DNA from: Macrostomum lignano
Taxonomy: Eukaryota
NCBI GenBank assembly: GCA_002269645.1
Contig: NIVC01000294.1
Coordinates: 62,001-126,000 of the forward strand
Direction: 5' to 3'
Length of the DNA stretch: 64,000 bases
Shown here: piece by piece, positions 16,101-61,689 of the stretch
How the letters are laid out: each line of letters starts with the position of its first letter
How positions within the stretch are numbered: position 1 is the first letter of the stretch
Made by a program: the position numbers and the translations under genes
Notes under the pieces: model-generated
Told to the model about the DNA's origin: nothing
Database searches by the model: none
What the model saw: the letters and a program-made list of their open reading frames with translations, nothing else

Positions 16101-19100
16101 GGCGCATCTGAAGGCTGCGTACGGCTGTTCAAAGATTGGGGGTTAGTGGGGGGGGCGCCACACACACCCTCAATTACCCCAGCTAATGCTGGCATCCATT
16201 TTACAGCTGGGTGAACTGAAGCAATGCAGAGTTAAGTGTCTTGCTTAAGGACACAGATTGTTATGAGTGGGTCGAGAATCAAACCCCCCCTCCCCAACCT
16301 TAAAGTCGGGAGTCCGATGCTCTTACCACTAGGCTACAACCCCCTTTAATTGTTGGATTATAAATTCACATCAGAAAGTTGTAGAAAGTCGACACTTGTT
16401 AATCCCAAAGCAAAAAAAAATTAAGCAGCTACTCCTTGACTAAGAGCGGAGCTTGCATAGATTTTAGCAGCCCAGCAGAGCATTCAAACAACGCTCGTGA
16501 AACTGAAGTTTATAGAAATGAACTAATAAAAGTGTGTGTTTCGAGGCAGAAGCCATAAAAGTTTGTATAAATATAGCTCAAAATCAAATGTTCGGCAGTC
16601 GCATGCCCCGGACTCCCTTTAACAAACTTCTCAAATAAAGTGAGAACTTTTGGCACTTTTTCCCAGAGCAAAAATATAGGATCAAGTTTAAGTTTTGTGT
16701 CAGTTTAAAGCGAAAGATGTCTTCCTTCGAAAAAATTCCATCTTAATTAAATGAATGAGCTTTTAATAAAAATTATGTTTAAAATGATTGCACTATGCCA
16801 CTTATAGGCCTACCATGAAAGTGAGTCTTAAATCCTTCTAAATCTTATAGACTCTTCAATCCGACTAAATCTCATGGACTCTTTAAATCTAACGAAATCT
16901 TTAAAAACTTTCAAATCCAACAAAAAGTTTTTTCCAACGAGTGTCAGAAAATTCAACTAAAATGAAATTACCTAACTAGCCTATAACTGTAATTCCAATG
17001 GCAAAACTATTTACAGCTATTGCAGAAAACTAACAAAAAATGAGTAGTTCTAACGCTAAGCAGCAAGCAGTCATACGAGTTGAAACTAAAAGCTTCGTTG
17101 CTCAGTGTATACTTTCTGATAGTACTGAAATGAAATGATAGGGTGAAACAAAGGTCACCTAAAGAGATACACAGAGATATTATAGAAAAAGAAGCATGAC
17201 ACCCCATTGGCCATGCACATTGTCACTGCAACGTAAAGTGGGGGTGTGTCACTTTGAGTGGCGGGTTAGTGCAAAACAATCAAGCCTATTTAGCTAGTGC
17301 AGCAGCGTAAAAGAGAGGACAAGACTGAATCTATCTTTTTGAGAGCCTTGACTGAGGCCTTGCCTACCCAGGCCGTCATGCCAGTTAAAAGACTGCCAGC
17401 TACAAACAAACTAAACGAAGCTTCAACCGAAAACGGTTGTTGGTCTGCCGCCGAAAGCTTTCGTCAGCTTGGCGATCGATGCAGGCAGCTTCGCAGTCGT
17501 CGACAAGCTCAAGAGCAGCAGAAACAGCTTCAATTGCGCTTAGAACAATCCAAACAGCAGCAGCACAGAAATAGTTCAATATTGTTGCAGCTGCTTTTCT
17601 GCGAAAGCAACGATAGTGAGGATCAAAATAATAGCGCTCAACCACCGACGTTTCAGACTAATCTGCACATGCGACTGCCCAGGCCTCGCTATGCCGCAGA
17701 TTTTGCCGCCTCAGAATTTATCCCACAACGCGAGCTGATCCCGCTAGATGAGACTTTATCGAATGGTGAAGCCTCCGCTAGCGCGTCACGAGCCACTTTC
17801 TCCAACCACTTCGATTACGAAGATGACGAATTAGCTGAAACCGCGAGCAGCAGTCACGATTTAGATGCCGAACTAATCGAGAGAAGCCAAGACCTGCTTT
17901 TGGATCAGTTTCACGAATGGCATCGAAGTTGCAATATGTTCCACGTGATGGCCTACCATCCTGAGTACCTGGACATCTTCCTGCGCTTTCACAACTGCCT
18001 GCTGCGTAGTGCCGGGCCTGTTGGATACGCCGAACGGCACTACCTGGCTTTGATGGTGAGTGAACTATGTGAAATATTGTCACTCCCTAGATTATGAATG
18101 TCACTCCGTAGATTATGAATATCACTCCGTAGATTAGAAATGTCACTCCTTAGATTTGAAATGTCACTCATTAGATTTGAAATTTCACTCGTTATATTAT
18201 AAATGTCACTCCTTAGATTATAAAGGTCCCTCATTAGATTTGAAATTTCACTCCTTGGATTAGAAATGTCACTCATTAGATTTGAAATGTCACTCATTAG
18301 ATTTGAAATGTCACTCATTAGATTTGAAATGTCACTCATTAGATTTGAAATGTCACTCCTTAGATTAGAAATGTCACTCATTAGATTAGAAATGTCACTC
18401 CTTAGATTAGAAATGTCACTCATTAGATTAGAAATGTCACTCATTAGATTTGAAATGTCACTCCTTAGATTTGAAATGTCACTCCTTAGATTTGAAATGT
18501 CACTCCTTAGATTAGAAATGTCACTCATTAGATTAGAAATGTCACTCATTAGATTTGAAATGTCACTCATTAGATTTGAAATGTCACTCATAAGATTAGA
18601 AATGTCACTCATTAGATTTGAAATGTCACTCCTTAGATTTGAAATGTCACTCCTTAGATTAGAAATATCACTAATTAGATTAGAAATATCACTCATTAAA
18701 TTAGAAATGTCACTCATTAGATTTGAAATGTCACTCATTAGATTTGAAATGTCACTCATTAGATTTGAAATATCACTCCTTAGATTAGAAATGTCACTAC
18801 TTAGATTAGAAATGTCACTCCTTAGATTATGAATGTCACTCCGTAGATTATAAATGTCACTCCTTAGATTAGAAATGTCACTCCTTAGATTAGAAATGTC
18901 ACTCCTTAGATTAGAAATGTCACTAATTAGATTAGAAATATCACTCATTAGATTAGAAATGTCACTCATTAGATTAGAAATGTCACTCATTAGATTAGAA
19001 ATGTCACTCATTAGATTTGAAATGTCACTCATTAGATTAGAAATGTCACTCATTAGATTTGAAATGTCACTCATTAGATTTGAAATGTCACTCATTAGAT

Positions 19101-22100
19101 TAGAAATGTCACTCCTTAGATTTGAAATTTCACTCCTTAGATTTGAAATGTCACTCATTAGATTAGAAATGTCACTCGTTATATTATAAATGTCACTCAT
19201 TAGATTTGAAATGTCACTCATAAGATTAGAAATGTCACTCATTAGATTTGAAATGTCACTCCTTAGATTTGAAATGTCACTCCTTAGATTAGAAATATCA
19301 CTAATTAGATTAGAAATATCACTCATTAAATTAGAAATGTCACTCATTAGATTTGAAATGTCACTCATTAGATTTGAAATGTCACTCATTAGATTTGAAA
19401 TATCACTCCTTAGATTAGAAATGTCACTACTTAGATTAGAAATGTCACTCCTTAGATTATGAATGTCACTCCGTAGATTATAAATGTCACTCCTTAGATT
19501 AGAAATGTCACTCCTTAGATTAGAAATGTCACTCCTTAGATTAGAAATGTCACTAATTAGATTAGAAATATCACTCATTAGATTAGAAATGTCACTCATT
19601 AGATTAGAAATGTCACTCATTAGATTAGAAATGTCACTCATTAGATTAGAAATGTCACTCATTAGATTTGAAATGTCACTCATTAGATTAGAAATGTCAC
19701 TCATTAGATTTGAAATGTCACTCATTAGATTTGAAATGTCACTCATTAGATTAGAAATGTCACTCCTTAGATTTGAAATGTCACTCATTAGATTAGAAAT
19801 GTCGCTGATTAGATTTTAATGTCACTCCACTGCAAAACTTCGTGCCCTCAGTATGTAAACTCAGTAAGCAGACCAGTATATGTATATTATATATTTCAAA
19901 ATGGTCTTTTAAAACCCCTGGAACCTTCTTTCTGTCTGCACAACTTCTTGTGTGCATCTCTCTATCGAGCTAAAATATTCATCTCTCAAATGAAATAAAA
20001 ACCTTTTTTAACCTCGGCACTGAGGCCACTGCCCTGGATATGCGAGAATTTGCAAAAACTGAATTGGGGTGTTAGAGGCCATTATCTATCTCAGACAGTG
20101 TGCGAGCTGTTACTCTTTCTGTTGAAAAGCGGGGCCTCACTCACTGCTTACTGTGCAGCAAAGTGGCTGGCTTTTTACATCAAAGTGTGTGCGTCTTTGC
20201 GTTAGTTCTGCTCATACAGCTTCTGCCTGCCTCGCTTGTCTTTTGCGGGGCCTTTAGCCCTGTAAAACATGCGACTTTGTGGAGCAAACTTGATGGCAGC
20301 TGCATCATAAATATGTGTGCCTGTGTTTACACGCAACAGTACACGACTTTGCTTTTTAAGTTTTTAGATATTGTTTATTTATTTACCTTTGGATATACTT
20401 CACTGTGGTTTAATTTTCGGGTTTGTTTGCGATTGTAAATTGCTGCAAATTGCAATCTATAGCTATGAGCTCTCTCTCTCTCTTTCTGCTATTCTATAGT
20501 CTGTATTTCGTCAATTTCAATGTACACTCACCCGATTCCCCTCTCACCAGCACCCACCCCATTGTACACTCACCCGATTTTCCTCTCACCCAGCACCCAC
20601 CCCAATGTACACTCACCCGATTCCCCTCTCACCCAGCACCCACCCCAATGTACACTCACCCGATTCCCCTCTCACCCAGCACCCACCCTATGCACACCCA
20701 GGCCGCCAGTCGCCATCGCTGCGCCTACCTTGCCCACCTTCACGCCGCCGAGTTCATCCACCTAAACGGAGACGAGTCCTGGCTGCGCGGCCTCGAGCAC
20801 GCCTCATCCAAGATGCAGAAACTCGGCCAGCTATGCCGCCTGGTGGCCCACCGACCCTGGGAAATCACCTCGGATATTTTGCGCCCGCTGCTAACTGGCG
20901 CTGACTCGCTGTCTCAGTCGGAGCTGGTCCACTGCATGTGCATTCTGGCTCATTTTACCGCGCTGGCCGGCTTTGTGGCCGGGACAGGTGTCCGGCCCGA
21001 GATTGACTCGCCTTTAGGTCACACTTATCGAAGTCAAAGTGGCGAGTCTCTGTATCAGCAGCAGCAGCAGCAGCAACAGCAGAATTTCCTGCAAAGCAGT
21101 TGCAACAGCACCAGTGGTAACCTGACTACGGGCCATCTGCCTTCGTCTACCAGTCCCACACCTTCCAGTCCTGGGGTGAGAGACTATATGTCATTCAGGT
21201 TTTGTTCGGTTATTGCTGTGAGATCTCACAGGAGAATAGACTTTTATGATAGACAGTCTACCATACGATATCTAATAGGGAATTTTTAGTTATTACTTAT
21301 TACCGAATTATACTAGGGGGTTGTAGCCTAGTGATTAGTGTCAGACTCACGACTTGATGGTCGGGGGTTCGATTCCCGATCCAACTCAGAACGGAACAAT
21401 TAGTGTCCTTGAGCAAGACACTTAATTCTGCATTGCTTCAGTTCACCCAGCTGTAAAATGGGTGCCAGCATTAGCTGGGGTAATTGAGGCTGTGTGTGGC
21501 GACCCCCAGTCCTTGGACTGAACAGCCGTACGCAGCCTTCAGATGCGCCGCGCAATAGCTGCGGCTGAGCCGTAGGTTGCACATCTCTCCCAGTTGGGGC
21601 AGGCGTAATCAATTATTTGAATCCTTTATTTACACCCTGCTATCTGTCACCGCGGGCCTCCCAAACCAGATCGACCCGAACCAGCGGGTCCTGGATCTCA
21701 TGAACGCCATCAAAGACATTGACGACGAGACTGAAGGTGGCGAAGCCCTGCCAGAGGAGCAATTGATTCGCCGATTCGAGTGCATCGAAGCTGAGACCGC
21801 CGGGCTGCCCTGCTTTCACCGGAGCGTCTCCCGTGAGCAGCAACAGCAGCAGCAGCAGCAGCAAATGCTGCTCCGACAGCAGCAGCAACAGCAGCTCAAC
21901 AGTCAGGAGTTGATAGCCGCTGAATTGGCAAACTTCTGTCAGGAGCCCGGATACGCATATAAAGATTTTCTTCTGGCCAAAGCTGACAACAAGCAATTGA
22001 GAAGTTTTCGAATTCAGGTTTGTTAATTAGAAACTTTTTCTTAAAATAACGACTGAGGGTAAATGGTATTTAAGATACAAGTAATCCTATTCCCCGTTGT

Positions 22101-23066
22101 GCTCTAGCTGATATGAAGCCTACCCCCAATGTGTACATCACTAGCTGATATAAAGCCTACCCCCAATGTACACTAGCTGAAATAAAACCTACCCCAATGT
22201 ACACTAGCTGATATAAAACCTACCCCCAATGTACACTAGCTGATATGAATAAGCCTACCCCCAATGTGTACATCACTAGCTGATATAAAGCCTACCCCCA
22301 ATGTACACTAGCTGATATAAAACCTACCCCCAATGTACACTAGCTGATATAAAACCTACCCCCAATGTACACTAGCTGATATAAAACCTACCCCCAATGT
22401 ACACTAGCTGATATAAAACCTATCCCCAATGTACACTAGCTGATATAAAACCTATCCCCAATGTACACTAGCTGATATGAAGCCTACCCCCAATGTACGC
22501 TTGCTGATATGAAGCATATCTCTTAATGTACACTCACGCATCAATTCCAGGACTACTCCTGGGAAGAGGACGGCTGCTGTCTCGTTGATCGCTATCTGCC
22601 CAGCATAGGTTACGAACTCAACGAACGTTTTGAAACGTCGTTTAATTTAACCTACCTCACGATGGGCATGAATACCAACGTTGAAACGGCGCCGTTCCGT
22701 CGCGCTGTCTGGTACTACGTGCACAGCATATTCGGCATTCGACACGACGACTATGATTATCACCTCATCAATCGAATGTTGAGCATTGAGTTGAAGAAAT
22801 ATTGCAAGTTAGTGGCTTGCGCTCCGGAGCAGGTTACTATGGGGCACTATCGCAGCGCGATGCCAGGCTTCAAGCACTCGGAAAAGGTGATAGAGGAGAG
22901 AGGGAGGGTAGGGAGAATAGCTGCAATAAAAATCTTAATCCACCATTTTAATCTAAACCTTAACCAACCGCAGGTCCACGTGAATCTGGTAATCATGGAC
23001 GCCCGAGTTCAAGCCTGTCTGCTCTACAGTCTCCGAGCTCTAAATGACCACACTACTGGCCAGTGA
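9802..23066 (+). CDS. SESN: Sestrin, 6 coding exons: join(9802-10143,17657-18055,20702-21175,21670-22017,22551-22886,22974-23066), ~663 aa
   Basis: All junctions are GT..AG and phase 0. Motifs match sestrins: VMAYHPEYL..FL..H..LL...GP....RHYLALM|AASRHRCAYL, LVAHRPWEIT, YAYKDF, SFRIQ|DYSWEEDG, NLTYLTM, FRRAVWYYVHSIFGIRHDDYDY, FKHSEK|VHVNLVIMDARVQACLLYSLRAL. Confidence 0.93.
11917..12395. repeat. 21-bp minisatellite in sestrin intron 1 (~22 copies)
   Basis: Unit GTGTTTAGAGTG(C/A)CAAA(C/A)TGG; produces the spurious VFRVPNW, HSKHPVW and CLECQNG ORFs. Confidence 0.95.
13030..13492. repeat. Near-pure polypyrimidine (C/T) tract with 13-bp subunits
   Basis: CTCTCCCCTCC(C/T)G and CTCCCCTCCATCT units decaying into (CT)n; few purines over ~460 bp. 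Confidence 0.9.
14175..15246. repeat. 65/70-bp satellite built from CTAAA-type pentamers (~15 copies)
   Basis: Unit CTAACTAAACTAAAGCTAACTAGAACAAACTAAGCTGAGCTAAACTAAAC(TAGAC)TAAACCTAAAGAGAG. Confidence 0.95.
15990..16344 (-). mobile_element. tRNA-derived SINE with conserved central domain and (ATT)-like tail
   Basis: Reverse complement is strongly similar to the copy at 21316-21617; head GGGGTTGTAGCCTAGTGG; degenerate ATT/ATG triplet tail at 15990-16040. Confidence 0.85.
17657..18055 (+). CDS. SESN: Sestrin exon 2
   Basis: Acceptor TTTCAG| at 17656; TNLHMRLPRP...SEFIPQ...HYLALM; donor |GTGAGT at 18056. Confidence 0.9.
18075..19830. repeat. 21-bp minisatellite (~83 copies) at the 5' end of sestrin intron 2, with a 630-bp higher-order duplication
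   Basis: Unit GAAATGTCACTC(A/C)TTAGATT(T/A); rare variants recur exactly 630 bp apart (18581 vs 19211; stops 18832/19462). Confidence 0.97.
20518..20701. repeat. 42-43-bp minisatellite (4 copies plus a partial) ending at the intron 2 acceptor
   Basis: AATGTACACTCACCCGATTCCCCTCTCACCCAGCACCCACCCC; TG(T/C)ACAC starts at 20521, 20563, 20606, 20649, 20691. Confidence 0.9.
20702..21175 (+). CDS. SESN: Sestrin exon 3 (Cys125-equivalent; polyQ)
   Basis: Acceptor CACCCAG|; AASRHRCAYLAHLH...HRPWEIT...; donor GGG|GTGAGA. Confidence 0.9.
21316..21617 (+). mobile_element. tRNA-derived SINE (CORE/V/Meta-like central domain) in sestrin intron 3
   Basis: A box TAGCCTAGTGATT, B box GGTTCGATTCC; central GTGTCCTTGAGCAAGACACTTAA...CTGTAAAATGGG resembles conserved metazoan SINE central domains; second copy in the window. 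Confidence 0.85.
21670..22017 (+). CDS. SESN: Sestrin exon 4 (linker, polyQ); 5' boundary uncertain (alternative in-frame AG 15 nt downstream)
   Basis: AACCAG|ATC GAC CCG...RVLDLMNAI...YAYKDF...SFRIQ|GTTTGT. Confidence 0.8.
22104..22535. repeat. ~32-bp minisatellite (~13 copies) ending just before the intron 4 acceptor
   Basis: Unit AATGTACACTAGCTGATATAAAACCTACCCCC (e.g. 22332, 22364). Confidence 0.93.
22551..22886 (+). CDS. SESN: Sestrin exon 5 (Leu-pocket and GATOR2-binding region)
   Basis: TTCCAG|GACTACTCCTGG; DYSWEEDG...HDDYDY...FKHSEK|GTGATA. Confidence 0.92.
22974..23066 (+). CDS. SESN: Sestrin exon 6 (last coding exon)
   Basis: CCGCAG|GTC CAC GTG; VHVNLVIMDARVQACLLYSLRALNDHTTGQ*. 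Confidence 0.92.
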   Translation, partial: VHVNLVIMDARVQACLLYSLRALNDHTTGQ

Positions 23067-26414: not shown

Positions 26415-26804
26415 CTAAGTCGAGAGCTGGCGTCTACGGCCGTAGCTCTCCTGAATTGTTGCAATAGGTGGCGACAGACTTCGACAACGCGTCTGAATTT
26501 GCGGCTGCAGGTTATTGATCTGCGTGGACTTGCGCCCTGACGATGACGACCTAGCGGTGTACCTGTTGGACCAGTTCACCGGCTCTTTCATCTCGTCGAC
26601 GCCGCGAACTTTTGCGGCGGCGTACTTTTTCAACTTGTCAGAGTTGACGGTTGTGCGGTAGCCTGGAGGGCGCGAATCTCTCTTTGGCTGAGTCATTCGC
26701 CTGCTCTGTTTCCAGTAGTAAGCCAGGACCACTGCGATAGACACTAGGAGCATTGTTACTAGCAGGCCTACCACTATTAAACTGATGGTCACTTCGCTCG
26801 CCAT
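26415..26804 (-). CDS. Putative small single-pass membrane protein (129 aa), unknown function
   Basis: True ATG; ~23-aa hydrophobic segment ISLIVVGLLVTMLLVSIAVVLAYY followed by basic WKQSRR; GC-rich island in AT-rich DNA; upstream acceptor-like TTTTTCATATCAG| at 26891. Confidence 0.55.
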   Translation of the reverse strand: MASEVTISLIVVGLLVTMLLVSIAVVLAYYWKQSRRMTQPKRDSRPPGYRTTVNSDKLKKYAAAKVRGVDEMKEPVNWSNRYTARSSSSGRKSTQINNLQPQIQTRCRSLSPPIATIQESYGRRRQLST

Positions 26805-27498
26805 TCCGGTTTTCTTTGTCTGACCAGTTGATGCGTTTTAGCCGCTAGGCCTGTGGGTTCACCGGGGGGTCGTGGCATGAGAGTCTAATGCTGATATGAA
26901 AAACAGAAATTACGTTTTTTTCCATAAATTCAGTACACGATCAATAGATTCCAAGGCTAAAATGTAATAAGCTATACTTTAGCGAACTACAGTTCATAAA
27001 CGGTTATTACTTACATATATATATGGCATCTGCTATAGAATTGCGACGATCGAGTTCGAATGCTGGAACTCCTTTTTGATAACAATTTTTTTCGTGAACT
27101 TTTGATTTAAATCTCGAATCAACAAAGTTCAATAGGAATCAAGTAATAAAATTGTAGAATACAATCCAACGAATGGGCCGCTTTTCAATTTTTGTATTAA
27201 AAGTGACAATTGCTGAGAGAGTTGAACTGCAAGTTGAGTGACTTGTTTTTATTTTATAGTCTATGGTAATGCATCAATGTGGAACTAATTGATTTGAATT
27301 ACATGCGTTGAACTTCTCGTTCTCATTTGTTTGTATAGTTGTAGAAACATCTTCGCCAAGGGTTAAACTCAGTTAAAGCTATCGTTGTTTCTGTTTGTTT
27401 ATTCTACAATAACTTCTTTATCAGGGGCGTCGCCACGGGGAGGGACCGATTCTAAAGATAATGTACATGTAGGAATTTCGTCATGTACACGTACATAT

Positions 27499-27981: not shown

Positions 27982-28101
27982 ATGGCCTGCTATAAGGCGG
28001 CAAATCTTCGCTGGCCCTGCTATCACCATTTTCGCAGTTTGGACATCGGCGCTAACTGCTCCAGTCATTCACCGTTGCAGCCTTCTGAGCTTCCAGAAGA
28101 G

Positions 28102-28143
<42 letters not shown>

Positions 28144-28605
28144 ACAAGCAGTCAGGAACCAACATCGACCACTGGACCTTGCGGCACTGCTGCTTCAACC
28201 AATCAGCCACCAGTCGTTTGCAAGCGCTGCAAAAAGTATCTCAGCCTGTTGAAGGTGCTCCGTCAGACCAGAGATTGCAGCAACGGCATCGCCAACGGCT
28301 ACGGCTGCTGTCACACCGGCTGCTGCAGCGACGATCGATGTGGACGAAGGCCTGCTGTCGAGCAGGGAGATCGTCAGCCCGAGCTGGCAGCAAATGACGC
28401 CGGTGGTACTTCATCGGGTTTCGGCACCGGAAAATTGCAGAACCGATGCAGTTTCTGTTGCGGCTGCTGTCCCAGTGACGGAGATACGAGTACGAGTAGC
28501 CGGTTGGGAAGTGCTCAAAGTTGCGCTACTCATAATCAGACTGCAGTGCATGGCTCAAATCGAAGTGCTGAGCCGCGAAGGCAGACTGGGTGTCGGATTA
28601 TGTAG
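27982..28605 (+). CDS. Possible coding exon or ORF: polyQ plus Cys-rich segments, unknown product
   Basis: 207-codon ORF in a GC-rich island, Q15 tract, CKRC and CCHTGCC clusters; possible acceptor TTTTCGCAG| at 28037; no family recognised. Confidence 0.4.
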
Positions 28606-30262: not shown

Positions 30263-32069
30263 CTAAGCGCACAGGGAGTCGTCAACCTGAGCGATACTCA
30301 CCTTGCCGAAGACGTCGTTGTTGCCGCCTGTCTTCCCTGCGATCTTCTTGCCGGATGAGCTCGCATAGCTGCCGCCGCCGCCTCCGTAGCCGTCCTCGCT
30401 GTCGCCGGATCCTCCGCAGCCGCCAGAGTAGCCGCCGCCTCCGCCGCCGCCTCCACCACGGCCGTCAGGAGGAGCTCCAGAGTTGCTGCCGCCTCCGCCG
30501 CCTCCGCCGTAGCCGCCGAACCCGTTGCTATCCGACCCACCGTTGCCCCCGGCCCAGTTGCCTCCGATGCTTCTTCCACCGTAGCCTCCGCCTTTGTCCG
30601 TGGCTTGCGCTGTTCCGTCTGAACTCCAGCCAGCTCCGCCCGCTCCCGAGTTATCATTGCTGTCTCCTTCACCGCCTTGCCCGTCTGATGTCCCGCAAGA
30701 GCTTTCAGTGCTGCTTGTTCCGTCTCTGCCGACCGACGAGGAAGACTCGGCACCGCCGCCTCCTCCTCCGCCGGCCGCCAACAGCAGCTTCTCGGCGCCG
30801 TCTGTGTACACAAAACTGCCACCTCCCCCGCCTCCTCCGCCACTGCTGCCGCTGTTTCCCGGCTTACCAACAACAACCGTGAGAGTTTGCGACATGACCA
30901 GCCTGAAATCGGCTTTCTTGAATGCGCCTCTGCCGCCGTTTGCGTTAGCGGATGACTTGCCACCACTCGCGCCCCAAGCCGATATTTGATAGCAGCCATC
31001 GGCCGGCGGAATGAAAGTCATCACCGATCCAGTTTGGTTGCTCGAGTCTGTTGGAGGAGCTGCATAGAGTTCGATCGAATCAGTTACAGTGTTTTCTAAT
31101 AGCACCCAGAACCCGGCATCTACGCTCGAACGAGTTTGGTTAGAAAGAAGTTCCCGCGCTCGACTCACAATTAAAATCGGCTGGCGCACTGGTCATAGTT
31201 GGTGTCGTAGTTTCAGCTGTAGTGGTAGTTGATGTTGTGGTGGTAGTTGATGTTGTAGTGGTAGTTGGTGTTTTAGTGGTAGTTGATGTTGTAGTTGTAG
31301 TTGGTGTTTTAGTGGTAGTTGATGTTGTAGTGGTAGTTGGTGTTTTAGTGGTAGTTGATGTTGTAGTTGTAGTTGGTGTTGTAGTGGTAGCTGGTGTTGT
31401 AGTGGTAGCTGGTGTTGTAGTGGTAGCTGGTGTTTTAGTGGTAGTTGGTGTTGTGGTTGTAGCTGGTGTTGTAGTGGTAGCTGGTGTTGTAGTGGTAGCT
31501 GGTGTTGTAGTGGTAGCTGGTGTTTTAGTGGTAGTTGGTGTTGTGGTTGTAGCTGGTGTTGTAGTGGTATCTGGTGTTGTAGTGGTAGTTAGTGTTGTAG
31601 TGGTAGTTGGTGTTGTAGTGGTAGTTGATGTAGTGGTAGCTGGTGTTGTAGTGGTAGTTGGTGTTGTGGTTGTAGCTGGTGTTTTAGTGGTAGTTGGTGT
31701 TGTGGATGTTGTAGTCAAGGCTGTAGTTGTGGCGATCGTAGAGCCACAAGCTGCCCGATTTCGAAGCGTCTGCGTGTCGCACGTCGGCCCCTCGGTGTTC
31801 TGCCACTTTAGCAAGAGGTCGCAGCTGTTGCCAAGGACGCAGGTTTTAGTGCCAGGCAGATACTGGTAGACAGAGCACACAGTGGTGTTAACCGCGCACT
31901 CAACCGCGCACACTCGAGAGTCAAAAACTCCGAACACTTTGCGCTGGTCGCCAGCAGCCGGGGCCGCCTCCGCGAAGCACAGGTCCGGCCTCTTGTCGAA
32001 GACGAAGGTCACACCGGCAGCTCGAGAGCTCCAGATGGCCACTATGATGACAATGCTCGCTAAAGACAT
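30263..32069 (-). CDS. Secreted PAN/apple + Thr-rich mucin + ALK/LTK-type glycine-rich-domain protein; join(complement 32069-31169, 31119-30263), ~585 aa
   Basis: Signal-like N-terminus MSLASIVIIVAIWSSRAAG; PAN Cys pattern CAVECAVNTTVCSVYQY...CVL; a 49-nt phase-1 intron (GTGAGT...TTCTAAC...TAG, 31168-31120) fuses the two ORFs in frame (..ADFN-Y-AGFW..); GRD motifs TFIPPADGCYQISAWGASGG, LTVVVGKPG, GGGGGGGSFV, LLLAAGGGG, GGGGGYSGG, GKVSI. Confidence 0.85.
31215..31712 (-). repeat. Coding 18-bp-type repeat encoding a (TTTP[A/T]T)n mucin stalk
   Basis: GTAGTGGTAGCTGGTGTT-type units; lies within the PAN-GRD gene. Confidence 0.9.
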
Positions 32070-32615: not shown

Positions 32616-34085
32616 TCACCCAAGAAACTTCTGTCCGGAGTTACCATCCATTAACGGTCGATATCTCAGCTGTTCCATTTCAAAACGACAACCATTAAAT
32701 ATGTCCTCAACTTCGGAAGCCAGCCACAGAAGCACTGCCGGATTCTCACTGTTTTCTGCTGCAGCGTGTAAAATTGTTCGGTTTTTGAGGCTTTTAACAG
32801 AAATGCTTTCTTTAAATCGATTTTTGAAGCCAACGTTTGAAGAGCTTCCAATGCTTGATGTTTGAAAGTAACGTACACCGCACTCTCTCCATCACTGTCG
32901 ATATCGAAAAATCGCTGCTTGTCTTCAACTTCAGAGACAAGCCAAAGAAACGCCGACTGATTCTCGCTGTTTTTAGCTGCAGAATGCAAAATCGTTTGAT
33001 TTCTCGAGCCTTTTGCGGAAAGGCAGTTTTGCAAACCGAGTTCCGTTGCTAATGCCTGAAATATCTTCAAGTCTTGATTTTTAGATGCAGCATACACGAC
33101 TGTCTTTACTTCCTCGTCTGGATCAAAGAATCGCTGCTTGTTAACTTCGGAAGCGAGCCACAGAAGCACTGACTGATTCATATTGTTTTCAGCTGCCGCA
33201 TGCAAATTGTCCGACTTCTGGGACCCTTGGCGGAAGCGCACAGTTCCAAACCGAGTTCCTTTGGCAATGTCTGAAGAGTGTTCCAAGTCTTGGCATCTAA
33301 AGGCATTATACACAGCACTCGTTCCATCCTTGTCTGGATCGAAGAATCGCTGCTTGTCTTCAACTTCGGAAGCGAGCCATAGTAGCACTGAAGGATTCTC
33401 ACTGCTCATTGCCGAAATGTGTAAAATCTGTCTTCCTCGGCATTTGACGGAAAGGCAGTTTTTTCAAACCGACCGCCGTTGCTAATTTCTGAAGAGCCTC
33501 CAAGTTTTGATATTGGAAAGCAACATGCACGGCACTCTTGAAATCCATCCTCGTCTGGAATGAAGAACTGCCGTTTGTCTTTTATCGTGGAAGCAAGCCA
33601 ACGAAGAAAATCTGGGTTTTCGCTGTTTTGAGCAGAAATGTGCAAAGGTGTTTCCATCTCAGCATTCGTCTCTTTGACCAACTGTTGTCCACATTTTTCG
33701 CAAATAATTTGCAGTGATTGGACTGCCGAACCTGTCTGCTTGCAGCAACAGGCAAAGTGAAGCATGTTGTTGAATTCGTCGCTTCTCACTCTGAGGCACA
33801 GATCAGGACGTCTGTCAGCAAAGAATTTTAACAGCTGGACATCGGACGTGACAGCTGCCAGAAACAGCAGTGCCTTCGCTTGTACTCGTATATCATTCTG
33901 ATCCTCAATGCACTTTTTAGTGTCCTTGCTATTCTGTTCTGCTCTATCAATGTCGTCATTATGGCAGGCTTTGAGAAATTCCCTGTGCCACTCTATGCAC
34001 TGGCTGTCTGCCTCGCTCCAGTTAGATTCGAATTCGAATTCGCACAGTCCAAACTGATTTTTAAGTCGAAGTCCTCATCATCCAT
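32616..34085 (-). pseudogene. Ankyrin-repeat gene with five ~73-aa tandem double-ankyrin units, multiple frameshifts
   Basis: LH.AA.NS.N..VLLWLASEV.DKQRFF..D.DG repeats; DNA landmarks at 32711, 32929, 33145, 33364, 33585 (period 216-221 bp); ATG at 34085 (MDDEDFDL) needs a frameshift to join the long frame. Confidence 0.75.
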
Positions 34086-35937
34086 TGTGCGCGTCTGGCA
34101 CAGCTGTGAATTCTCCGGGCTGTAAAAAGTAATCGATTTTTTAGATTTAGGCTAATTAAACCAATGCGTGGATTTAAAAATGTCGAACCTAGTGATGAAT
34201 TGTGATCGGCGTTTCTATGTTCCCCTGTAGATACATTAAGACTTACGGACATTTCCCCTCAGGCACTTTCCTTTTGACATCACCGTCTAGACAGTAGTAT
34301 AGTGTGGTAGAGAGAGGTGTGGACATTGGAGTTGCAACGGCCGTGAGTTCAACTCACGACTTAGAGGGCAAAGAAATGAACCGTAGCTACTACAAGCCGA
34401 GTTTTTCATAAATAACACGGTTCATAATCTAAATTAAAAACCAGTAAATTTCGTTTTTTAAGAAATGTGCAATTAACTTACAGGGGTATACTTAAAATCA
34501 ACAAGTAGAGCAGAGCACCTAAATGATTCCAGCAGTACGGTGTGTGCATGCCTTTGAACAACTATATTAATTCCAACGATTGGTTTTCAAATTTGATATA
34601 AACAATCTATGTGCTACTCGCAAAGTAAGGTAAGTATTTTAAAACAAAGTCCAAAGGTTTTAGTACCATTCACAAGTAAATATATTTATTATGCATATAA
34701 TATTTTAAGGACTAAAATTAATATTGCATGCAATAATATTCACTAGAGACAATTTGCACCTCAGCGCAAAGCCTTCGGCGACATCGTTTTACTTATTTCC
34801 AACTGCTCAAAGGTCATGTGTCTGCCCAAATCTCCCATAAACAGACTTACAGTAACTACAAGGATTTCAGTTCAATACTTTACAGTTCAGTTCAATACCT
34901 CCCTTTGGCCTCTTCGTGTGGTCGGTGGAATGAGGTCTTTGTTGTTGTTGAACACATGATTGTTTGAAATGAGTCCAGCGGCTTATAGCCTACGAGTACA
35001 AGTACAACAAGCCTACAAGGCGTCTTGATGGCATTTCGCAAATTTTACAGCAGGGGCTGCAACGACTTTCATAGCCGGAAGGGATGAGATGCCCTCACAG
35101 TCCACTGGCACTGGCAACATGCTTCGAACTGATAGTAAAACGTTTCTCACTCCTCACACTCGCTACTCTCAGTAGCAGATCGCTCCCCAGTCACTCGGTC
35201 TCATTCTCTCGGCCAGGGTACAATACGTAAGTGCTTTCCACCTAATTCTTGCCTCTGCGAGGCCAATAGCCGAGAGTCTAAATTTTGGACTGGGCAGAGA
35301 GAGAACAATAGAGCATAAACAATTTTTTGGCGCCAAATTCTTGGCTTAGCTGACTTAAAAAGCTTTATTGACCAGAGAGAGAATGAAGTTTTGAGAGAAA
35401 TAATCTTCTTCTCTCTTCTTCTCCTTAGAAAATCCTGCAGGACATCAGCCACGGCGCTCTGCAAGGCGGCTCTCGAGTCTACGAATCCCGATAGAGAGTT
35501 TTGAGTGCAGCTGCTGGCTAGGGGCTGATTCGCTGAGAACTGAGGGAGCGGCTCCGAGAGGGACGAGTGAGAATAACGGTAGTTACATGTGTTTAACTTA
35601 AGTGCTTCTTTATCTCAAGGGCCAGGTAAAGAATTCAGCTCATGGATGAGAGACAAATGAGAGAGGAAAAGAGAAAGACTCGAAGATGAGAAATGAGAGA
35701 GGATAGGAGAGGCGTGAGATGGGATCAGAGAACAGATTTTAAAAGATAAGAGGAGAGAAGAGGGGAGAGAAGAGGGGGGGTGAGAAGAGAGAGAGAGAGA
35801 GAGTTGATGAGACACAATTTAAACCTTGAGCGGGCATGTTGCTTTTATGAAGGGGTTTCAAAGGACACAAGGGACAAAGGACGTATTTTTTAATTTACAT
35901 TTTCTTATAATCATCAAAAATAAATAATACCATCATT

Positions 35938-38900
35938 TCAAACCTTTTTAGAATCTTCATTATTCGGCTGATTAGCGCCTTCTAGTGCAAAAATAAGCAT
36001 TCTAGCAGCCACTTCGTTGCCAAATTCTTGAGCACGGAGCAATAAAGTTTGAAGACACTTTTTTGAATGATCAGCATTTGCGGCAAATAGAAGTAGCTCT
36101 AAAACTTTATTGTGACCATTCTGTGCTGCAATGTAGAGAGGTGACTCGCCAGTTTTCATTGAATATTGATATCGGCTTGAGCCCAGATGAGTAACTTCAC
36201 TATCCGATCATGGCCATTCTGCAATGCAACATACAGAGGTGACTCGCCAGTGTTGCACCGAAGATTTGCATCGGCATGCGCTTTGATAAGTGAATTCACT
36301 ACAGTTAATTTGTCATTGCGGGATGCAATGTAGAGAGGTGTGGCGCCAGTGTTACGTCGAAGATCGACGTCCGCTTCTGCCTTGATGAGTAGGTCCACAA
36401 CGAGACTGTGACCGTTCTGCGCCGCAAGGTAAAGAGGTGAGCAGCCGGATTTACGTTGGATATTCATGTCGGCTTGTGCTCGTATCACAGATTCAACAAT
36501 TAGCAAATGATCTTTCTGTGATGCATAGTGGAGTGGTGACTTGTTATTGTTTCTTAGAATATTCACATCAGCTTGTGCTTTAATGAGCAAGTTTACAACT
36601 TGACGATGACCATTTTGAGACGCAATTATTAGAGGTGTCTCGCCAGATTTTCGCTGAGCGTTGACTTCAGCTTTTGCTCGAATAAGTGATTTCACTACTT
36701 GCTCGTAACCATTTTGAGATGCAACATAGAGGGCTGAGCAGCTAGCGTCAGTTTGATTTGAAGATTGATGTCGGCTTGTGCAGGAATCAACACCTCAGCC
36801 ACCTTCTGATGCCCATTCTGCGAAGCAATGTAGAGTGGCGAGCAGCCGCCAAAACCATTGAGATCAAGGGAGGCATTTGCTTTAATGAGTGCATCTACTA
36901 TTTGTTGGTGACCATTTTGTAATGCAATGAAAAGTGGTAAGTCACCACCGCTTCTTTGAAGATTATCATCGGCTTTAGCTTTTATGAGAGATTCTAAAAC
37001 ATTCAGGTGGCCATTCTGCGACGCAACGAAGAGCGGTGAGCTGCCATCGGCTGCCCTAGCATTGACGACAGCTTGGGCTTTAACTAGTGAGTCCACAACG
37101 TCCTGATGTCCATATTCAGCTGCAATGTACAGATGAGGTGACTCGCCATCAGTTCTGTCAAGATCGATGTCGGCTTGCGCTCTGATGAGTGTGCCGACAA
37201 CAAATTTATAACCATTCTGCGATGCAACATAAAGAAATGACTCGCCTGTGTTTCGTTGAAGATTTACATCTGCTTGCGCTTTGATTAGTAAATCTAAAAC
37301 TTCCCGATGACCATTCCCGAAGACAGGTGAGCATCCTTCTGTCTTCTCCTGGTGGTTGACATCGGCTTGGGCACTACGTAATTAGCGAATTCACTGCCTG
37401 CAGATGACCGTTCTGTGATGCAAATATCAGGGATGTTACGCCAGTTTTAAGTTGAATATTGGTGTCCGCTTGCGCTTCGGTTAGCAATAGAACTATTTGT
37501 TTGTGACCTTTTTGTGACGCCATGAGAAGCGGTGAGCAGCCACCAGTTTCTTGGAGATCGACGCTGGCTTGTGCATCAATAAGTAATTTGACGACTTCTT
37601 TATGACCTTTCTGCGATGCAATGTATAGAGGCGAGCCGCCTTGGCTGTTTTGAAGATTTACATCGGCTTGTGCTTTGATGAGTAACTCAACAAGTTGCTG
37701 AAAACCATTCTGTGATGCAATGTAAAGAGGTGACTCTCCAGTGCAAAGTTGAATATTGACGTCGGCTTGGGCTTTAATCAGTAAGTCTACGATCAGATGG
37801 TGACCATTTTGTGCTGCAATACATAGAGGTGAGCCGCCTTGGTTCTGCTGCAAATTGACCTCGGCTTGGGATTTTATAAGCAAGTCTACTATGATGCTGT
37901 GACCATTCTGTGATGCAATGTAGAGAGGTGAACGACTTTGGCTTTGATCAGCGAATCCAAGACTTGTTGATAACATAACTTTGAAGCGATGAAAACAGCA
38001 CTGAGTCCATCATCGTTTTGTTGACTGAGCTTCACGTTCTCTCGTACAAGGCTGCATAATATATCTTTCTTCCCTAGCAGACATGCAAGCATTGCTGGAG
38101 TCAGGGAAATTCCTTTGAAGTTAAGGAAACCGCGCATATTCTTACCCTTGTCAATCAAGTCGGGTCGCTTTCACAAGCGCTAATTTTCATAACCGCTAAC
38201 GACATGAATTTCACAAGCGCTAAATTTCATAATAGCTAAAAATTTGCCGCCTATACTTTCACAAGCGCTAAACTTCACAAACGCTAAACTTCAGAATAGC
38301 GAAACCACCTACTTTCACAAGCGCTAAACTTCACAAACGCTAAACTTCAGAATAGCGAAACCACCTACTTTCACAAGCGCTAAACTTCACAAGCGCTCGC
38401 GCGCTAAACTTCACAAGCGCTAAACTTCACAAACGCTAAACTTCACAAACGCTAACCTTTACAATCCCCAAAACACGAATGTCGGCTTCTTTTACAAGCG
38501 CTAAAATGTTAATATACTATATATACTAATATACTAATACTAATATACTATACTAAAATACTAAAATACTATTTTAGCGCTTGTGAAAGTAGGCGGCATT
38601 CGTGTTTTGGGGATTGTAAAGGTTAGCGTTTGTGAAGTTTAGCGTTTGTGAAGTTTAGCGCTTGTGAAGTTTAGCGCGCGAGCGCTTGTGAAGTTTAGCG
38701 CTTGTGAAAGTAGGTGGTTTCGCTATTCTGAAGTTTAGCGTTTGTGAAGTTTAGCGCTTGTGAAAGTAGGTGGTTTCGCTATTCTGAAGTTTAGCGTTTG
38801 TGAAGTTTAGCGCTTGGAAAGTAAGTGAGTTAGCGGTTATGAAGTTTAGCGCTTGTGAAGTTTAGCGCTTGTGAAAGTAGGCGGCATTTGTGTTTTAGCG

Positions 38901-43815: not shown

Positions 43816-44013
43816 TCTGGCTTCCCTTAAGTAATGAAATTGAATAAAGAATGAGTGAAGTTTTATTAAAACGAGACAACATATTGCAAAACATACTACA
43901 AATACAAAGGCAAACAAAGATAGAATAAGGCATATTGCAACAGAAAATAAAAGTTTTACTGCAAGGCAAAAAAGGTAAGTCTTGTACTACTGTAAGCGAT
44001 ATATTCTGTTCGT

Positions 44014-45057
44014 TCACATATATTGTACCATAGCAGTAGGTAGTCTATCCTGATACGGCCAGCCACACTCAAGGCCGACCCATAGTACTTCAGTGCGGAC
44101 ACTTGCGCGGTTCGTCCAACCGTTGTTCAGCTCGTGGAGCGCGTAGGCTACGGCCCGCTTCCAGGCAGCAATGGCCTGATACGGCTGCATTCGCTGCAGC
44201 GCCTGAAGCGTGGGCCGCAGTGCCTCTCTAGTTGGCAGGGGCCTGCCGTCCAAGCGGAGTCGCCCCATGCTAATGATGTAGTCTTTTATGCTATTGGCCA
44301 GACGTCGGTACTCGTCACGCTGAGAGCTGGGCAATTGGATGATTGCGATGCTGAAATCACCACCAATTTCCTGCAGGGGATCATGCTCGGCGTTATCCAT
44401 CAATGGCGGTATCAGAGCGACAGGCGACCTATTAGCTGGCTGGTGTTGGGGTCGCATGCCGTATTGCGGGGGTGGCGTTACCAACGGAGGCTGTCTCGGC
44501 GGCTGACTCATGACTGGGGACCTCGATGTTGGTCTCTGATTGCGGGATGATAAAACTGCTGGCGGCTATTGGACTGGTGATCTTGGCCGGGGCGACGAAG
44601 CAGTTGTCGGCGGTTTCTTAGCTATCGATTGCCGGGCTGGAGGCTGTTTGGCAGGTGACTTTGGTCTTGACCGGGGCGTTGCAATGGTCGAGGACGATTG
44701 GCGGGGTCCCAAACGATGCATGACGCTAGTGCTGGGCGCCTGGCTCCGGGGTAGCATGATGGCAGTTTTGCTGTTCGGCGGCTGGCGTTTTGACATGGCT
44801 GGGGGAACTAACACTGGGGTATCGGCCTGGCGACGCAATAGATCGGCGCGATCTTTCGGGGTCGTGCTTGGGGGCGCTCTTGGTTGAGTTACCACGGAGG
44901 CTAGGCGGGGTTTTGGTCCGGGCAGCTGGGGTCGAGTAGCCTGTCGATCTGGGATCGGCAGCTCATTTTCCTCATCACTGATGATTTCTCCTTCGTCACT
45001 AATGCTTAAACTCAACTCATCTTGCAGCCTTCTTAACTTCTCTGCTTCATCGGACAT
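44014..45057 (-). CDS. Gypsy-1 additional ORF3 (~347 codons, one internal TAG), non-env, unknown function
   Basis: ORFs 44566-45057 and 44014-44511 are in the same frame, separated only by TAG plus 18 sense codons; 3' splice site CTAATTATTGATCCAG| 16 nt before the ATG. Confidence 0.7.
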
Positions 45058-45429
45058 ATCAAATTCAAGATAGCTGGATCAATAATTAGCGGGATAACAG
45101 AATAGTTTGTTTGCTTGTTGTGTAATCTCGGTTTCAAGTGTCTGTGTTATTATTCCCTTTGTTCCCATTCTTTTGGACTCCTCATTTTCGTGACTCATCC
45201 TGTTTTTCGTCTTCTTTGGGCTCTAGTTTCGCTTTGGGTCGATAAATTTAGAGGGTCTTTGTACATTAGCATTGCCCTGGGTGAGTTCTTTCTTTGTATA
45301 AAATTTGGGGTTGGTCACGCAATTGGGGACGGCGAGAGGGCTAGAATTGGAGGTTGCGCAACAGACTGAGGGCTGTCAATAAGCGCTTTAGATGGCAGTC
45401 GCATCTTTGTCTGGCCTGGGTTGGGCGCC

Positions 45430-51172: not shown

Positions 51173-51237
51173 TGTGCTTCAGGGATTGGGATGGGAAATT
51201 AGGCTGGGATGCGCGTTTCTCCAGATTCTAATCCTTT

Positions 51238-56039: not shown

Positions 56040-56189
56040 TAAAAAAACCGCTTTTAGCACAGAGCAGGTGCAGAGAAAGCTTACGGCAAAATTAAAAAAA
56101 TTGGAATCCGTTTGCAAAATCAACTACTAATAGTAACGTGCATCAAAAGTTAGCAACTTGGCGCGACATAAAATGCATTGGTAATTACC

Positions 56190-61622: not shown

Positions 61623-61667
61623 AGTGTAGCATTTGAACGACTCGTTGAAAGGGTTTTGGCGTTTCGT

Positions 61668-61688
61668 AATCCCACTTAGCTGACACCA
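61668..61688 (-). promoter_or_regulatory. Primer-binding site of Gypsy-2 (tRNA-Leu-type)
   Basis: Plus strand AATCCCACTT-AG-CTGACACCA resembles the tRNA-Leu(CAA) 3' end AATCCCACTTCTGACA-CCA as recalled; 1 nt from the LTR. Confidence 0.75.
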
Positions 61689-61689
61689 G

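Follow-up and report, generated by a model that had tools for sequence, protein, structure and literature searches.

What protein, if any, is encoded where two open reading frames overlap in different frames on the minus strand of a Macrostomum lignano contig? ORF 1 (32069..31140) encodes a hydrophobic N-terminus, an eight-cysteine domain and a Thr-rich run, while ORF 2 (31189..30263) encodes a Gly-rich domain. An earlier note on this DNA had joined the two through a 49-nt intron and proposed a soluble protein that combines a PAN/apple domain, a mucin stalk and a glycine-rich domain (GRD) of the type found in the receptor tyrosine kinases ALK and LTK. We ask here whether the gene is real, to what its domains are related and what its product might do. 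Coordinates refer to the whole stretch of 64 kb that was analysed (the window) and are collected in Table 1.

Table 1. Features of the PAN-stalk-GRD gene, in the order of transcription
Feature	Position	Strand	Basis or remark
Start codon ATG	32067-32069	minus	first in-frame ATG past the upstream stop
Predicted signal peptide, aa 1-19 (MSLASIVIIVAIWSSRAAG)	32013..32069	minus	hydropathy; start codon included
PAN/apple-like domain, aa 27-108	31746..31991	minus	8 Cys; Pfam PAN_1, near cut-off
Mucin-like stalk, aa 111-294 (184 aa)	31188..31739	minus	70.7% Thr, 11.4% Pro, 4% Ser
Splice donor GTGAGT	31163..31168	minus	exon 1 ends at 31169, phase 1, after ...ADFN
Rest of minimal 49-nt intron	31120..31162	minus	CTAAC at 31139-31143; TAG acceptor at 31120-31122
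Ambiguous segment	31048..31119	minus	coding (YAGFWVLLENTVTDSIELYAA...) with acceptor 31120; intronic with CAG at 31060 or 31048
Glycine-rich domain (GRD)	30266..31047	minus	TNF-like beta-sandwich plus polyglycine-II lattice
Donor-like perfect 9-mer AAG/GTGAGT	30296-30304	minus	within the last 13 codons; probably unused
Stop codon TAG	30263-30265	minus	after ...GKVSIAQVDDSLCA; paralogues terminate at the same position

A two-exon gene with a short intron

ORF 1 is preceded by an in-frame stop 20 codons 5' of the ATG and terminates at a TAA (31140-31142) that lies within the proposed intron. Excision of 31168..31120 (49 nt, GTGAGT...CTAAC...TAG) leaves a CDS of 1758 nt for 585 amino acids without any internal stop, and the order signal peptide-PAN-(Thr)n-GRD is present in the minus-strand sequence as the earlier note had said. 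The join goes beyond chance since exon 2 has homologues and a confident predicted fold, since PAN and GRD occur together in single-chain homologues, and since the paralogous genes carry phase-1 GTGAG donors. Exon 2 alone matches M. lignano proteins (E 6.5e-22) and metagenomic proteins (E 1.7e-51). The locus is thus a two-exon minus-strand gene, 32069..30263, and genuinely protein-coding.

The donor position at 31168 is secure. GTGAGT is the sole consensus donor among the in-frame solutions, and in each of the two M. lignano paralogue genes a phase-1 intron opens with GTGAG at the equivalent position (Mlig019850, YEN G/GTGAGA; Mlig028980, SNY T/GTGAGC); the [F/Y]-x-N context of the donor is matched by the former and only approximated by the latter. 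On the acceptor side, AGs at 31120, 31060 and 31048 all yield open, in-frame, stop-free products, so that 49 nt is just one of three solutions, next to 109 and 121 nt. The join, the GTGAGT donor, the CTAAC and the AG on which the 49-nt intron had been proposed are all there, but its length is one choice among three that give an identical architecture. Length colinearity with the paralogues and a serine at the split codon (P0154, P0231) point to acceptor 31060, and colinearity appears to support the 109-nt intron at least as much as the 49-nt one. The GC content of the ambiguous segment is 0.44 versus 0.59-0.64 in the adjoining coding sequence. Pairwise alignment scores against 10 relatives differ by no more than 7 units between the three acceptors and do not discriminate, a MAFFT alignment of the sequences around the junction is likewise ambiguous on this point, and the polypyrimidine tracts of the acceptors are weak. 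A search for short introns in neighbouring M. lignano gene spans gave a single, uninformative example of 121 nt, and the M. lignano genome papers report mean intron lengths only (0.56-1.4 kb). In comparison with the 49-121 nt considered here, the homologous introns of the M. lignano paralogues measure 365-744 nt.

At the 3' end, six residues (DDSLCA) follow the last GRD strand, without an EGF-like module, and FGK precedes the stop by 12 codons, with neither a transmembrane (TM) segment nor a tyrosine kinase following the GRD. The same 12 codons separate the TAG from the donor-like 9-mer (G of its GT at 30301); they encode the final conserved beta-strand and the C-terminal Cys, both of which are common to the paralogues, whose C-terminal ends, ...GRVKIEVIGTVNHTACTG and ...GRVDIRLLGPASTCA, are each directly followed by a stop. 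Because the last strand, the Cys and the stop position are shared, the stop is real, and its closeness to the last GRD strand, already pointed out in the earlier note, is a property kept in the paralogues. No kinase-like ORF was seen by eye among the ORFs of the same strand in the 8.7 kb downstream.

An exact look-up did not find the 585-aa product in a collection of 15 billion proteins, and no near-identical transcript-derived protein occurs among the database matches; a canonical AATAAA was not found within 500 nt of the stop. The short intron conceals the exon join, with the consequence that the product is missing from protein databases, a lesson for annotation.

Elsewhere in the window we found no paralogues, only low-complexity matches, and scanning it for Rfam families and tRNAs returned nothing. 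The window also holds a retrotransposon pol whose best match is from M. lignano (1266 bits at 64% identity, versus 486 bits for the next match) and a 250-bp repeat that it shares with M. lignano at 82-86% identity; both make this free-living flatworm the nearest database relative. The joined exons of the sestrin gene, used as a query against a word-indexed database, gave no scorable relative.

The glycine-rich domain and its relatives

The GRD contains 31% Gly and scores just above the threshold of Pfam Gly_rich_2 (PF21722; 24.8 bits versus a cut-off of 24.3, E 2.5e-5). Since ALK_LTK_GRD (PF12810) gave no match to it at E<=1, membership of the GRD superfamily rests, at the level of sequence, on this sister model; NCBIfam gave no match. 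By phmmer, the domain matches LTK (7nx0, E 2e-5), with a recognisable N-terminal strand motif, while no sequence-level match to C. elegans ALK was obtained. The AF2 model is confident (pLDDT 89.8, pTM 0.89) and places strands at the two ends only, the long Gly-rich middle being neither helix nor strand. When this model was compared with the PDB by Foldseek, the top 21 matches were all ALK/LTK GRDs (best E 1e-12; next match E 0.3), with TM scores of 0.49-0.66 over these matches, the best chains of LTK and ALK reaching 0.62-0.66. The ALK/LTK-type fold that had been read from the letters is thus borne out by phmmer, the AF2 model and Foldseek against the PDB. The likeness extends over the whole domain of the receptor structures (7nx1, 7nx0, 7lrz, 7mzy, 7n00 and 7lir, E 1e-12 to 1e-6), although sequence similarity is just about 22-27% and the EGF-like domain, TM segment and kinase of ALK/LTK are absent here.

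Relatives of the domain at E<=1e-3 number 2667. The Gly-run motifs GGGGGSFV, LxAAGGGGG, GGGGGYSGG and GGGGGSY are all present and align with 15 invariant columns in 89 relatives, all family-invariant residues being kept; within the family the Gly runs do not vary, and it is the loops between them that differ in length and sequence. Bit scores are 96 for the flatworm paralogues, 60-85 for bacterial PEP-CTERM-type proteins, 57 for a phage family and about 27 for LTK. Judged by sequence, the domain is thus much nearer to the GRDs of bacteria, phages and metagenomes than to those of ALK/LTK, and is not a truncated ALK.

Outside Macrostomum, the best scores come from bacterial and metagenomic surface proteins with a PF12810/PF21722 GRD (up to 192 bits, 44% identity). 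The invariant pattern of Gly runs recurs in them, but they carry prokaryote-type sorting signals or tandem GRD arrays (giant multi-GRD proteins), and none combines PAN and mucin. PEP-CTERM occurs in 9 of 89 GRD relatives; other partners include T9SS C-terminal sorting domains, type IV pilin N-termini, FN3, Ig, EGF, discoidin and BatD. The GRD also matches two PHROG families (E 3e-15 and 1e-12), neither with an annotated function. Comparable glycine-rich domains form the tips of phage tail fibres, i.e., Pam3 gp24 and gp38 of Salmonella phage S16. In cyanophage Pam3, the gp24 tail fibre has a TNF-like and glycine-rich tip that resembles the ALK GRD and has been proposed to bind the host receptor via variable distal loops (PMC9608196). 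However, phage tail fibres are trimeric and have an N-terminal alpha-helical shaft and a chaperone, none of which exists here: upstream of the GRD no helix is predicted and PAN and stalk are found instead, and the genomic neighbours are sestrin and ankyrin genes, without any phage context. That bacteria recently passed on the GRD exon by horizontal transfer was considered as the main story and rejected, the family being established in Macrostomum with introns and occurring in cnidarians as well.

A PAN-GRD family in flatworms and corals

The first 19 residues are the only hydrophobic 19-mer of the protein, and hydropathy detects neither a second hydrophobic segment nor a hydrophobic C-terminal tail in the whole chain; this single N-terminal segment agrees with the soluble protein proposed before. 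The paralogues open with similar cleavable-looking leaders. Assignment of the following domain to PAN/apple is marginal. Pfam PAN_1 stops just short of its cut-off (21.2 versus 21.4 bits, E 2.5e-4), while the core C54-x3-C58-x6-C65-x11-C77 aligns with the PAN_1 domains of corals (coral score 31.8 bits) and UniRef labels the M. lignano paralogues Apple domain proteins. The AF2 model has a pLDDT of 57.9 overall and of 70-82 in a strand-helix-strand-strand core. Its most probable Foldseek matches are the PAN domains of plasminogen, HGF NK1 and Sarcocystis SML-2, at E values (0.7-2.5) that are not significant.

The stalk is a tandem array of an 18-nt (6-codon) repeat, recently expanded, of which 27 copies (87% matching, 31218-31703) keep the frame. 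As a Thr/Ser/Pro-rich tandem-repeat region in a secreted protein, it has the make-up of a mucin-type PTS domain, and we assume from its composition that it is a putative site of O-glycosylation. The product is thus a secreted, kinase-less, putative glycoprotein made of a signal peptide, a divergent PAN domain, the stalk and a GRD of ALK/LTK fold.

It belongs to a small, uncharacterised macrostomid family of signal peptide-PAN-GRD proteins. Known M. lignano members are Mlig019850, in two copies (g1 and g2, PAA61162 and PAA91998, 403 aa), and Mlig028980 (PAA57358, 373 aa), all named Apple domain-containing proteins, to which paralogue fragments can be added (A0A1I8GWL7, A0A1I8J935 and A0A1I8HUE3). 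In our alignments, P0001 and P0154 are M. lignano signal peptide-PAN-GRD proteins and P0231, P0157 and P0226 fragments of further paralogues. The domains of the protein are colinear with those of the family, and it shares the phase-1 GTGAG donor after the first GRD strand, a Cys within the motif G-C-Y-x-I-x-A-W-G-A, and the last strand G-[KR]-V-x-I with a C-terminal Cys immediately ahead of the stop; across the GRD, 44-59% of residues are identical. What the paralogues lack is the Thr/Pro stalk of 184 aa: in P0001 and P0154 the GRD follows directly on PAN, whereas P0231 and P0157, the closest M. lignano relative among them, have an acidic Asp/Tyr-rich spacer at this place. Relative to the family, the stalk is an insertion between the last PAN Cys and the first GRD strand.

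The earlier note did not recognise this architecture. The PAN-GRD layout is nevertheless already in the databases, not only in M. lignano but also in corals (Porites harrisoni KAM7432210, P. lobata CAH3155743, P. lutea XP_073250399 and Dendronephthya gigantea XP_028405580), and only the Thr-rich mucin stalk is new. The coral proteins look secreted and have an N-terminal PAN and a C-terminal GRD, as here. Unlike the flatworm protein, they exceed the PAN_1 threshold (about 32 bits), the Porites ones also that of ALK_LTK_GRD (about 34 bits); they have no mucin stalk, and Porites carries an extra short COLFI-like segment. Intron positions common to the coral and flatworm genes were looked for and are not conserved, the intron of Porites being in phase 0 before the GRD and the GRD of Dendronephthya being split into three exons. 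Because positions and phases differ, a common origin of the coral and flatworm layout is unproven. A Thr stalk between PAN and GRD occurs in none of the retrieved relatives and a known function in none of them either; the many functionally known proteins of identical PAN-mucin-GRD layout that would have spoken against the earlier proposal are thus not found among them. The searched literature contains no study of any PAN-GRD protein and nothing on Mlig019850.

Possible roles of the secreted product

In animals, the GRD of ALK/LTK has been studied almost solely as a ligand-binding module of receptors. No kinase-less animal GRD protein is described in the searched literature, and according to a fungal-genome paper the GRD domain allows no inference of function. 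We infer a function for the present protein from its domain context only. The best overall explanation, to which we give a probability of about one half, is a real secreted PAN-stalk-GRD gene whose product would be an extracellular two-headed binder or cross-linker. It would act outside the cell, in mucus, glycocalyx or another secretion, where the PAN module may hold a glycan or protein and a stiff O-glycosylated stalk may project the GRD. The GRD could then bind a second target via those variable loops that sit at the far end of its polyglycine lattice, in the manner of ALK/LTK, which bind a cytokine, and of phage tail fibres, proposed to bind a receptor on the host surface. This target might be self, as in a matrix or adhesive, or microbial, in which case the protein may be an agglutinin.

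This explanation overlaps with, and is hard to tell apart from, a less probable one, namely that lattice and stalk serve as a material that builds the glue of adhesive glands, eggshell, rhabdites or a mucus gel, without binding anything specific. A domain of 31% Gly next to a stalk of 71% Thr fits such a role, which the earlier note had listed as a mucus, adhesive or structural alternative, and the spacer is a hotspot of low-complexity expansion (rich in Thr here and in Asp/Tyr in P0231 and P0157). Moreover, glycine-rich bundles of the polyglycine-II type form stable and compact modules (PMC13243192). However, the GRD is present as one globular copy and does not repeat as a fibre-forming sequence would, cross-linking motifs are absent apart from 4 Cys, and the bacterial and phage relatives are surface-displayed or receptor-binding.

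A broader proposal, which we consider improbable, sees secreted PAN-GRD proteins from corals to flatworms as an old animal family in which the GRD is a free recognition module, a pre-receptor state from which ALK/LTK would later have taken their ligand-binding domain; the gene might also switch between soluble and membrane-anchored forms (donor 30301, TM exon 26819).

The earlier note had further suggested a ligand trap, i.e., a free GRD that sequesters the animal's own ALK-type ligand away from its receptor. The protein is secreted and kinase-less, and the ligand-binding fold of ALK/LTK extends along its entire GRD, but the bit scores disfavour this idea: a decoy is quite unlikely because the GRD resembles its bacterial, phage and metagenomic counterparts so much more closely than ALK/LTK. 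In addition, several paralogues with variable loops would not be expected for the tracker of a single ligand, and a PAN domain with a mucin stalk is no feature of known receptor decoys. Between the two suggestions of the earlier note, the mucus, adhesive or structural alternative is the better reading.

The donor-like 9-mer near the stop raises the question of a membrane isoform. Perfect MAG/GTRAGT 9-mers occur only twice on this strand in 64 kb, one of them 12 codons before the stop, and a same-strand ORF (26819-26418) in phase 0 with donor 30301 encodes ISLIVVGLLVTMLLVSIAVVLAYYW and then KQSRR, in a positive-inside arrangement. In-frame splicing to a CAG acceptor (26820) would append a TM helix plus some 95 aa of tail to give a type I receptor-like protein, the soluble form being the read-through product. 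Yet such a protein would lose the last beta-strand and the C-terminal Cys that are kept in all relatives, the downstream TM ORF is absent from the M. lignano paralogue loci, this ORF, with an ATG of its own right behind an in-frame stop, may be a small gene in its own right, and the frames agree by chance in one case out of three. We hold the membrane isoform to be very improbable.

It is hardly credible, finally, that the locus is a decaying paralogue or a chance pair of ORFs, for which the lack of the exact product and of near-identical transcript-derived proteins in the databases, the missing AATAAA and the weak polypyrimidine tracts might plead, but against which stand two ORFs intact across 1.7 kb, a 27-copy repeat that remains in frame, the full set of family-invariant residues, the high-confidence fold of the GRD, and the conserved donor phase and stop.

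The two-headed extracellular binder remains our preferred reading of the gene. Its wider interest is that a genetically tractable flatworm lineage, in which transgenesis has been demonstrated for M. lignano, has several secreted GRD proteins. The gene and its paralogues could serve to learn which partners a free polyglycine-II domain binds, and could help to trace the origin of the ALK ectodomain.

Gene model, splice sites and 3' end

The earlier note had joined two minus-strand open reading frames lying in different frames through a 49-nt intron, and this fusion holds up: excision of 31168..31120 leaves a coding sequence of 1758 nt (585 aa) with zero internal stops. The splice donor at 31168 is secure, since it is the sole consensus donor among 28 in-frame, stop-free GT..AG combinations and since a phase-1 GTGAG occurs at the matching place in both M. 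lignano paralogue genes. The contexts, all phase 1 (slash, splice site), are ...A-D-F-N T/GTGAGT in the window gene, ...V-Y-E-N G/GTGAGA in Mlig019850, whose intron measures 744 nt, and ...Y-S-N-Y T/GTGAGC in Mlig028980.

The proposed acceptor at 31120 (49-nt intron) does not stand as the sole solution, as the frame also stays open for AGs at 31060 (109 nt) and 31048 (121 nt). The AG at 31120 is the first usable one and has CTAAC 20 nt upstream. What favours 31060 is that the product then becomes colinear with every relative: the split codon is 10 residues away from an S-V-M-T-F motif, versus 30 in the 49-nt model and 4, 7, 11 and 13 in the relatives. It also places a Ser at the split codon, like the M. 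lignano proteins P0154 and P0231 (...V-F-N-S-...). The disputed 60 nt have a GC content of 0.44, which resembles that of the flanks more than that of the coding parts (0.59-0.64), and alignment scores against relatives do not discriminate between the acceptors. We consider the 109-nt and 49-nt introns roughly equal and the 121-nt intron less likely. Alternative 3' splicing may occur; the domain architecture is the same whichever acceptor is used.

Twelve codons upstream of the stop lies a perfect AAG/GTGAGT, one of two such 9-mers on the minus strand in 64 kb. The codons that follow it (VSIAQVDDSLCA) encode the final beta-strand of the glycine-rich domain (GRD), conserved in all relatives, and a macrostomid-specific C-terminal Cys, and the paralogues terminate at the same place. 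The conservation of strand, Cys and stop position argues for a genuine stop and a soluble protein, as the earlier note had proposed from a stop 8 codons after the last GRD strand. A membrane isoform, in which this 9-mer (30301) would be spliced through a CAG acceptor at 26820 to an ORF with a transmembrane (TM) helix 3.4 kb downstream on the same strand, is very improbable: the ORF is in frame with that donor, but it contains an ATG of its own, and nothing comparable lies near the M. lignano paralogues. The ORF, whose Pfam matches are all sub-threshold (DUF6479, E 0.0065), would encode a small membrane protein in its own right or else serve as an alternative 3' exon. The older model of Mlig019850, UniRef A0A1I8HF87 (P0121), leaves the last GRD strand by a splice that follows ...GRVKIE and continues for 384 domain-free aa that resemble non-coding or antisense translation (versus M. 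lignano locus L001 10001-11956); this splice, at the same spot as the donor-like 9-mer, is likely a mis-prediction.

Domains and their relatives

Residues 1-19, the sole hydrophobic stretch of the 585-aa product by hydropathy, resemble a cleavable signal peptide, and so do the paralogue leaders. Residues 27-108, with 8 Cys, are PAN-like with moderate confidence. Their Pfam PAN_1 score (21.2 bits, E 2.5e-4) falls slightly below the threshold of 21.4, and the core C-x3-C-x6-C-x11-C lines up with coral PAN_1 domains that themselves score ~32 bits. The AF2 model has low overall confidence (pLDDT 57.9) but a strand-helix-strand-strand core at 70-82; its most probable Foldseek matches are the PAN domains of plasminogen, HGF NK1 and Sarcocystis SML-2, at non-significant E-values. 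The stalk (aa 111-294; 70.7% Thr, 11.4% Pro) arises from an 18-nt repeat present in 27 copies, 87% matching, and is a young in-frame mucin-type region.

The C-terminal 285 residues contain 31% Gly, pass the Pfam Gly_rich_2 cut-off (24.8 bits against 24.3) and match LTK (E 2e-5) and ALK (~5e-4) in sequence. The AF2 model, built with an 89-sequence alignment, reaches pLDDT 89.8 and pTM 0.89; its top 21 Foldseek matches in the PDB are all ALK/LTK GRD chains (E 1e-12 to 1e-6, TM 0.49-0.66), and beyond these no match is better than E 0.3. At the level of the predicted structure, the ALK/LTK-type fold claimed in the earlier note is thus confirmed.

A full-library search with the GRD retrieves 2667 proteins at E<=1e-3. 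Among relatives of ordinary size, M. lignano supplies all of the best; the top scores go to giant metagenomic proteins that combine 5-8 tandem GRDs with EGF/TM or discoidin domains. The best overall, P0129-P0135 (Logan/ENA/JGI contigs), have 2000-3000 aa, E-values up to 1.7e-51 and 39-44% identity, and their contigs leave little space for introns; of two scanned, EGF-like and TM-like segments occur in one and an F5/8 type C domain in the other. Many smaller matches bear PEP-CTERM, T9SS or pilin signals, and two phage families are also matched. In the cyanophage Pam3 tail fibre, a TNF-like, glycine-rich receptor-binding tip resembles the ALK GRD (PMC9608196). Since bacterial, phage and metagenomic proteins are among the relatives and ALK/LTK are distant ones (~27 bits), the GRD is a widespread surface-displayed module, of which ALK/LTK represent one use among others.

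The architecture had been described as unfamiliar. PAN and GRD on a single chain already occur at several M. lignano loci and in corals; the mucin stalk between them does set the product apart, the PAN–mucin–GRD layout being found in 0 of ~284 retrieved relatives and a Thr/Ser/Pro-rich linker ahead of the GRD in one (P0222). Intron positions of PAN–GRD genes differ between corals and flatworms, so the layout need not go back to a common ancestor. The product is a stalked form of an existing uncharacterised family and not a new kind of protein.

Surroundings of the gene

The window holds no GRD paralogue elsewhere in its 64 kb; its proteins are absent from the protein database searched, and it differs in sequence from the M. 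lignano loci compared. The neighbouring sestrin gene is convergent with the GRD gene, and its large intron contains a 1.7-kb tandem array (18040-19788), one frame of which reads as MSDISNL repeats. The ankyrin-repeat cluster lies directly upstream on the same strand. The 250-bp element matches M. lignano contig NIVC01002498 (L003 14015-14257) at 82-86% identity and probably represents a MITE- or SINE-like repeat common within Macrostomum. With one pol ORF as query, that of retrotransposon copy 1, the outlying best match is an M. lignano pol (64% identity, 1266 bits versus 486 for the next). The GRD relatives, the pol match and the 250-bp element point to a macrostomid flatworm as the source, whether M. 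lignano itself, with sequence that the database lacks, or a congener. A GC/AT-skew anomaly at 12001-14000 lies by the 21-nt repeat; weak Gly-rich tblastn matches at 13.0-13.5 kb probably reflect low complexity rather than a GRD paralogue. The 207-aa ORF is a candidate coding sequence with no significant Pfam match.

Features of the GRD gene and its surroundings (window positions)
Feature	Position	Strand	Details
21-nt tandem repeat	11857-12309	plus	VPKWVFR units
250-bp element, two copies	16093-16343, 21312-21557	inverted to each other	flank sestrin 5' exons
Sestrin (PA26) gene	17297-23063	plus	exons ~17.9-18.06, 20.7-21.1, 21.6-22.0, 22.5-23.06 kb; Pfam E 1e-11, 1e-37
TM-helix ORF	26418-26819, ATG at 26804	minus	TM helix ISLIVVGLLVTMLLVSIAVVLAYYW, KQSRR, Ser/Arg-rich basic tail ~95 aa
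207-aa ORF	27982-28605	plus	14-residue polyGln run; Cys-rich tail (CKRCKK..., CCHTGCC, CSFCCGCC)
GRD gene, second ORF (different frame)	31189..30263	minus	ends at GRD gene stop
GRD gene, minimal 49-nt intron	31168..31120	minus	GTGAGTCGAG...TTCTAACC...GCGTAG
GRD gene, ATG + first ORF	32069..31140	minus	309 codons; in-frame stop 20 codons upstream of ATG
Ankyrin-repeat ORF cluster	32666-38000	minus	Ank_2 E 1e-45, 4e-38
Ty3/Gypsy-type LTR retrotransposon, copy 1	~44000-51200	minus	intact pol ORF 46917-50027; gag-like ORFs 50183-51172; integrase-tail ORF 45430-46359
Ty3/Gypsy-type LTR retrotransposon, copy 2	~56100-62000	minus	broken; protease/RT 59123-59962, integrase 56675-57370

Possible role

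As read from its sequence, the product is secreted and kinase-less, and a mucin stalk sets apart its two candidate binding modules. Its inferred role is to bind or cross-link partners outside the cell, in mucus, a surface coat or another secretion. The PAN-like module would hold one partner and the tip loops of the GRD a second; among paralogues, alignments show these loops to be variable and the Gly runs invariant. The partner might be self matrix or microbes. That the protein serves as a ligand trap or decoy for an ALK-type ligand, as the earlier note had suggested, is unlikely, given the sequence distance of its GRD from ALK/LTK and the membership of its gene in a multi-paralogue family. 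A free animal GRD has apparently not been studied so far, and the flatworm lineage is experimentally tractable.
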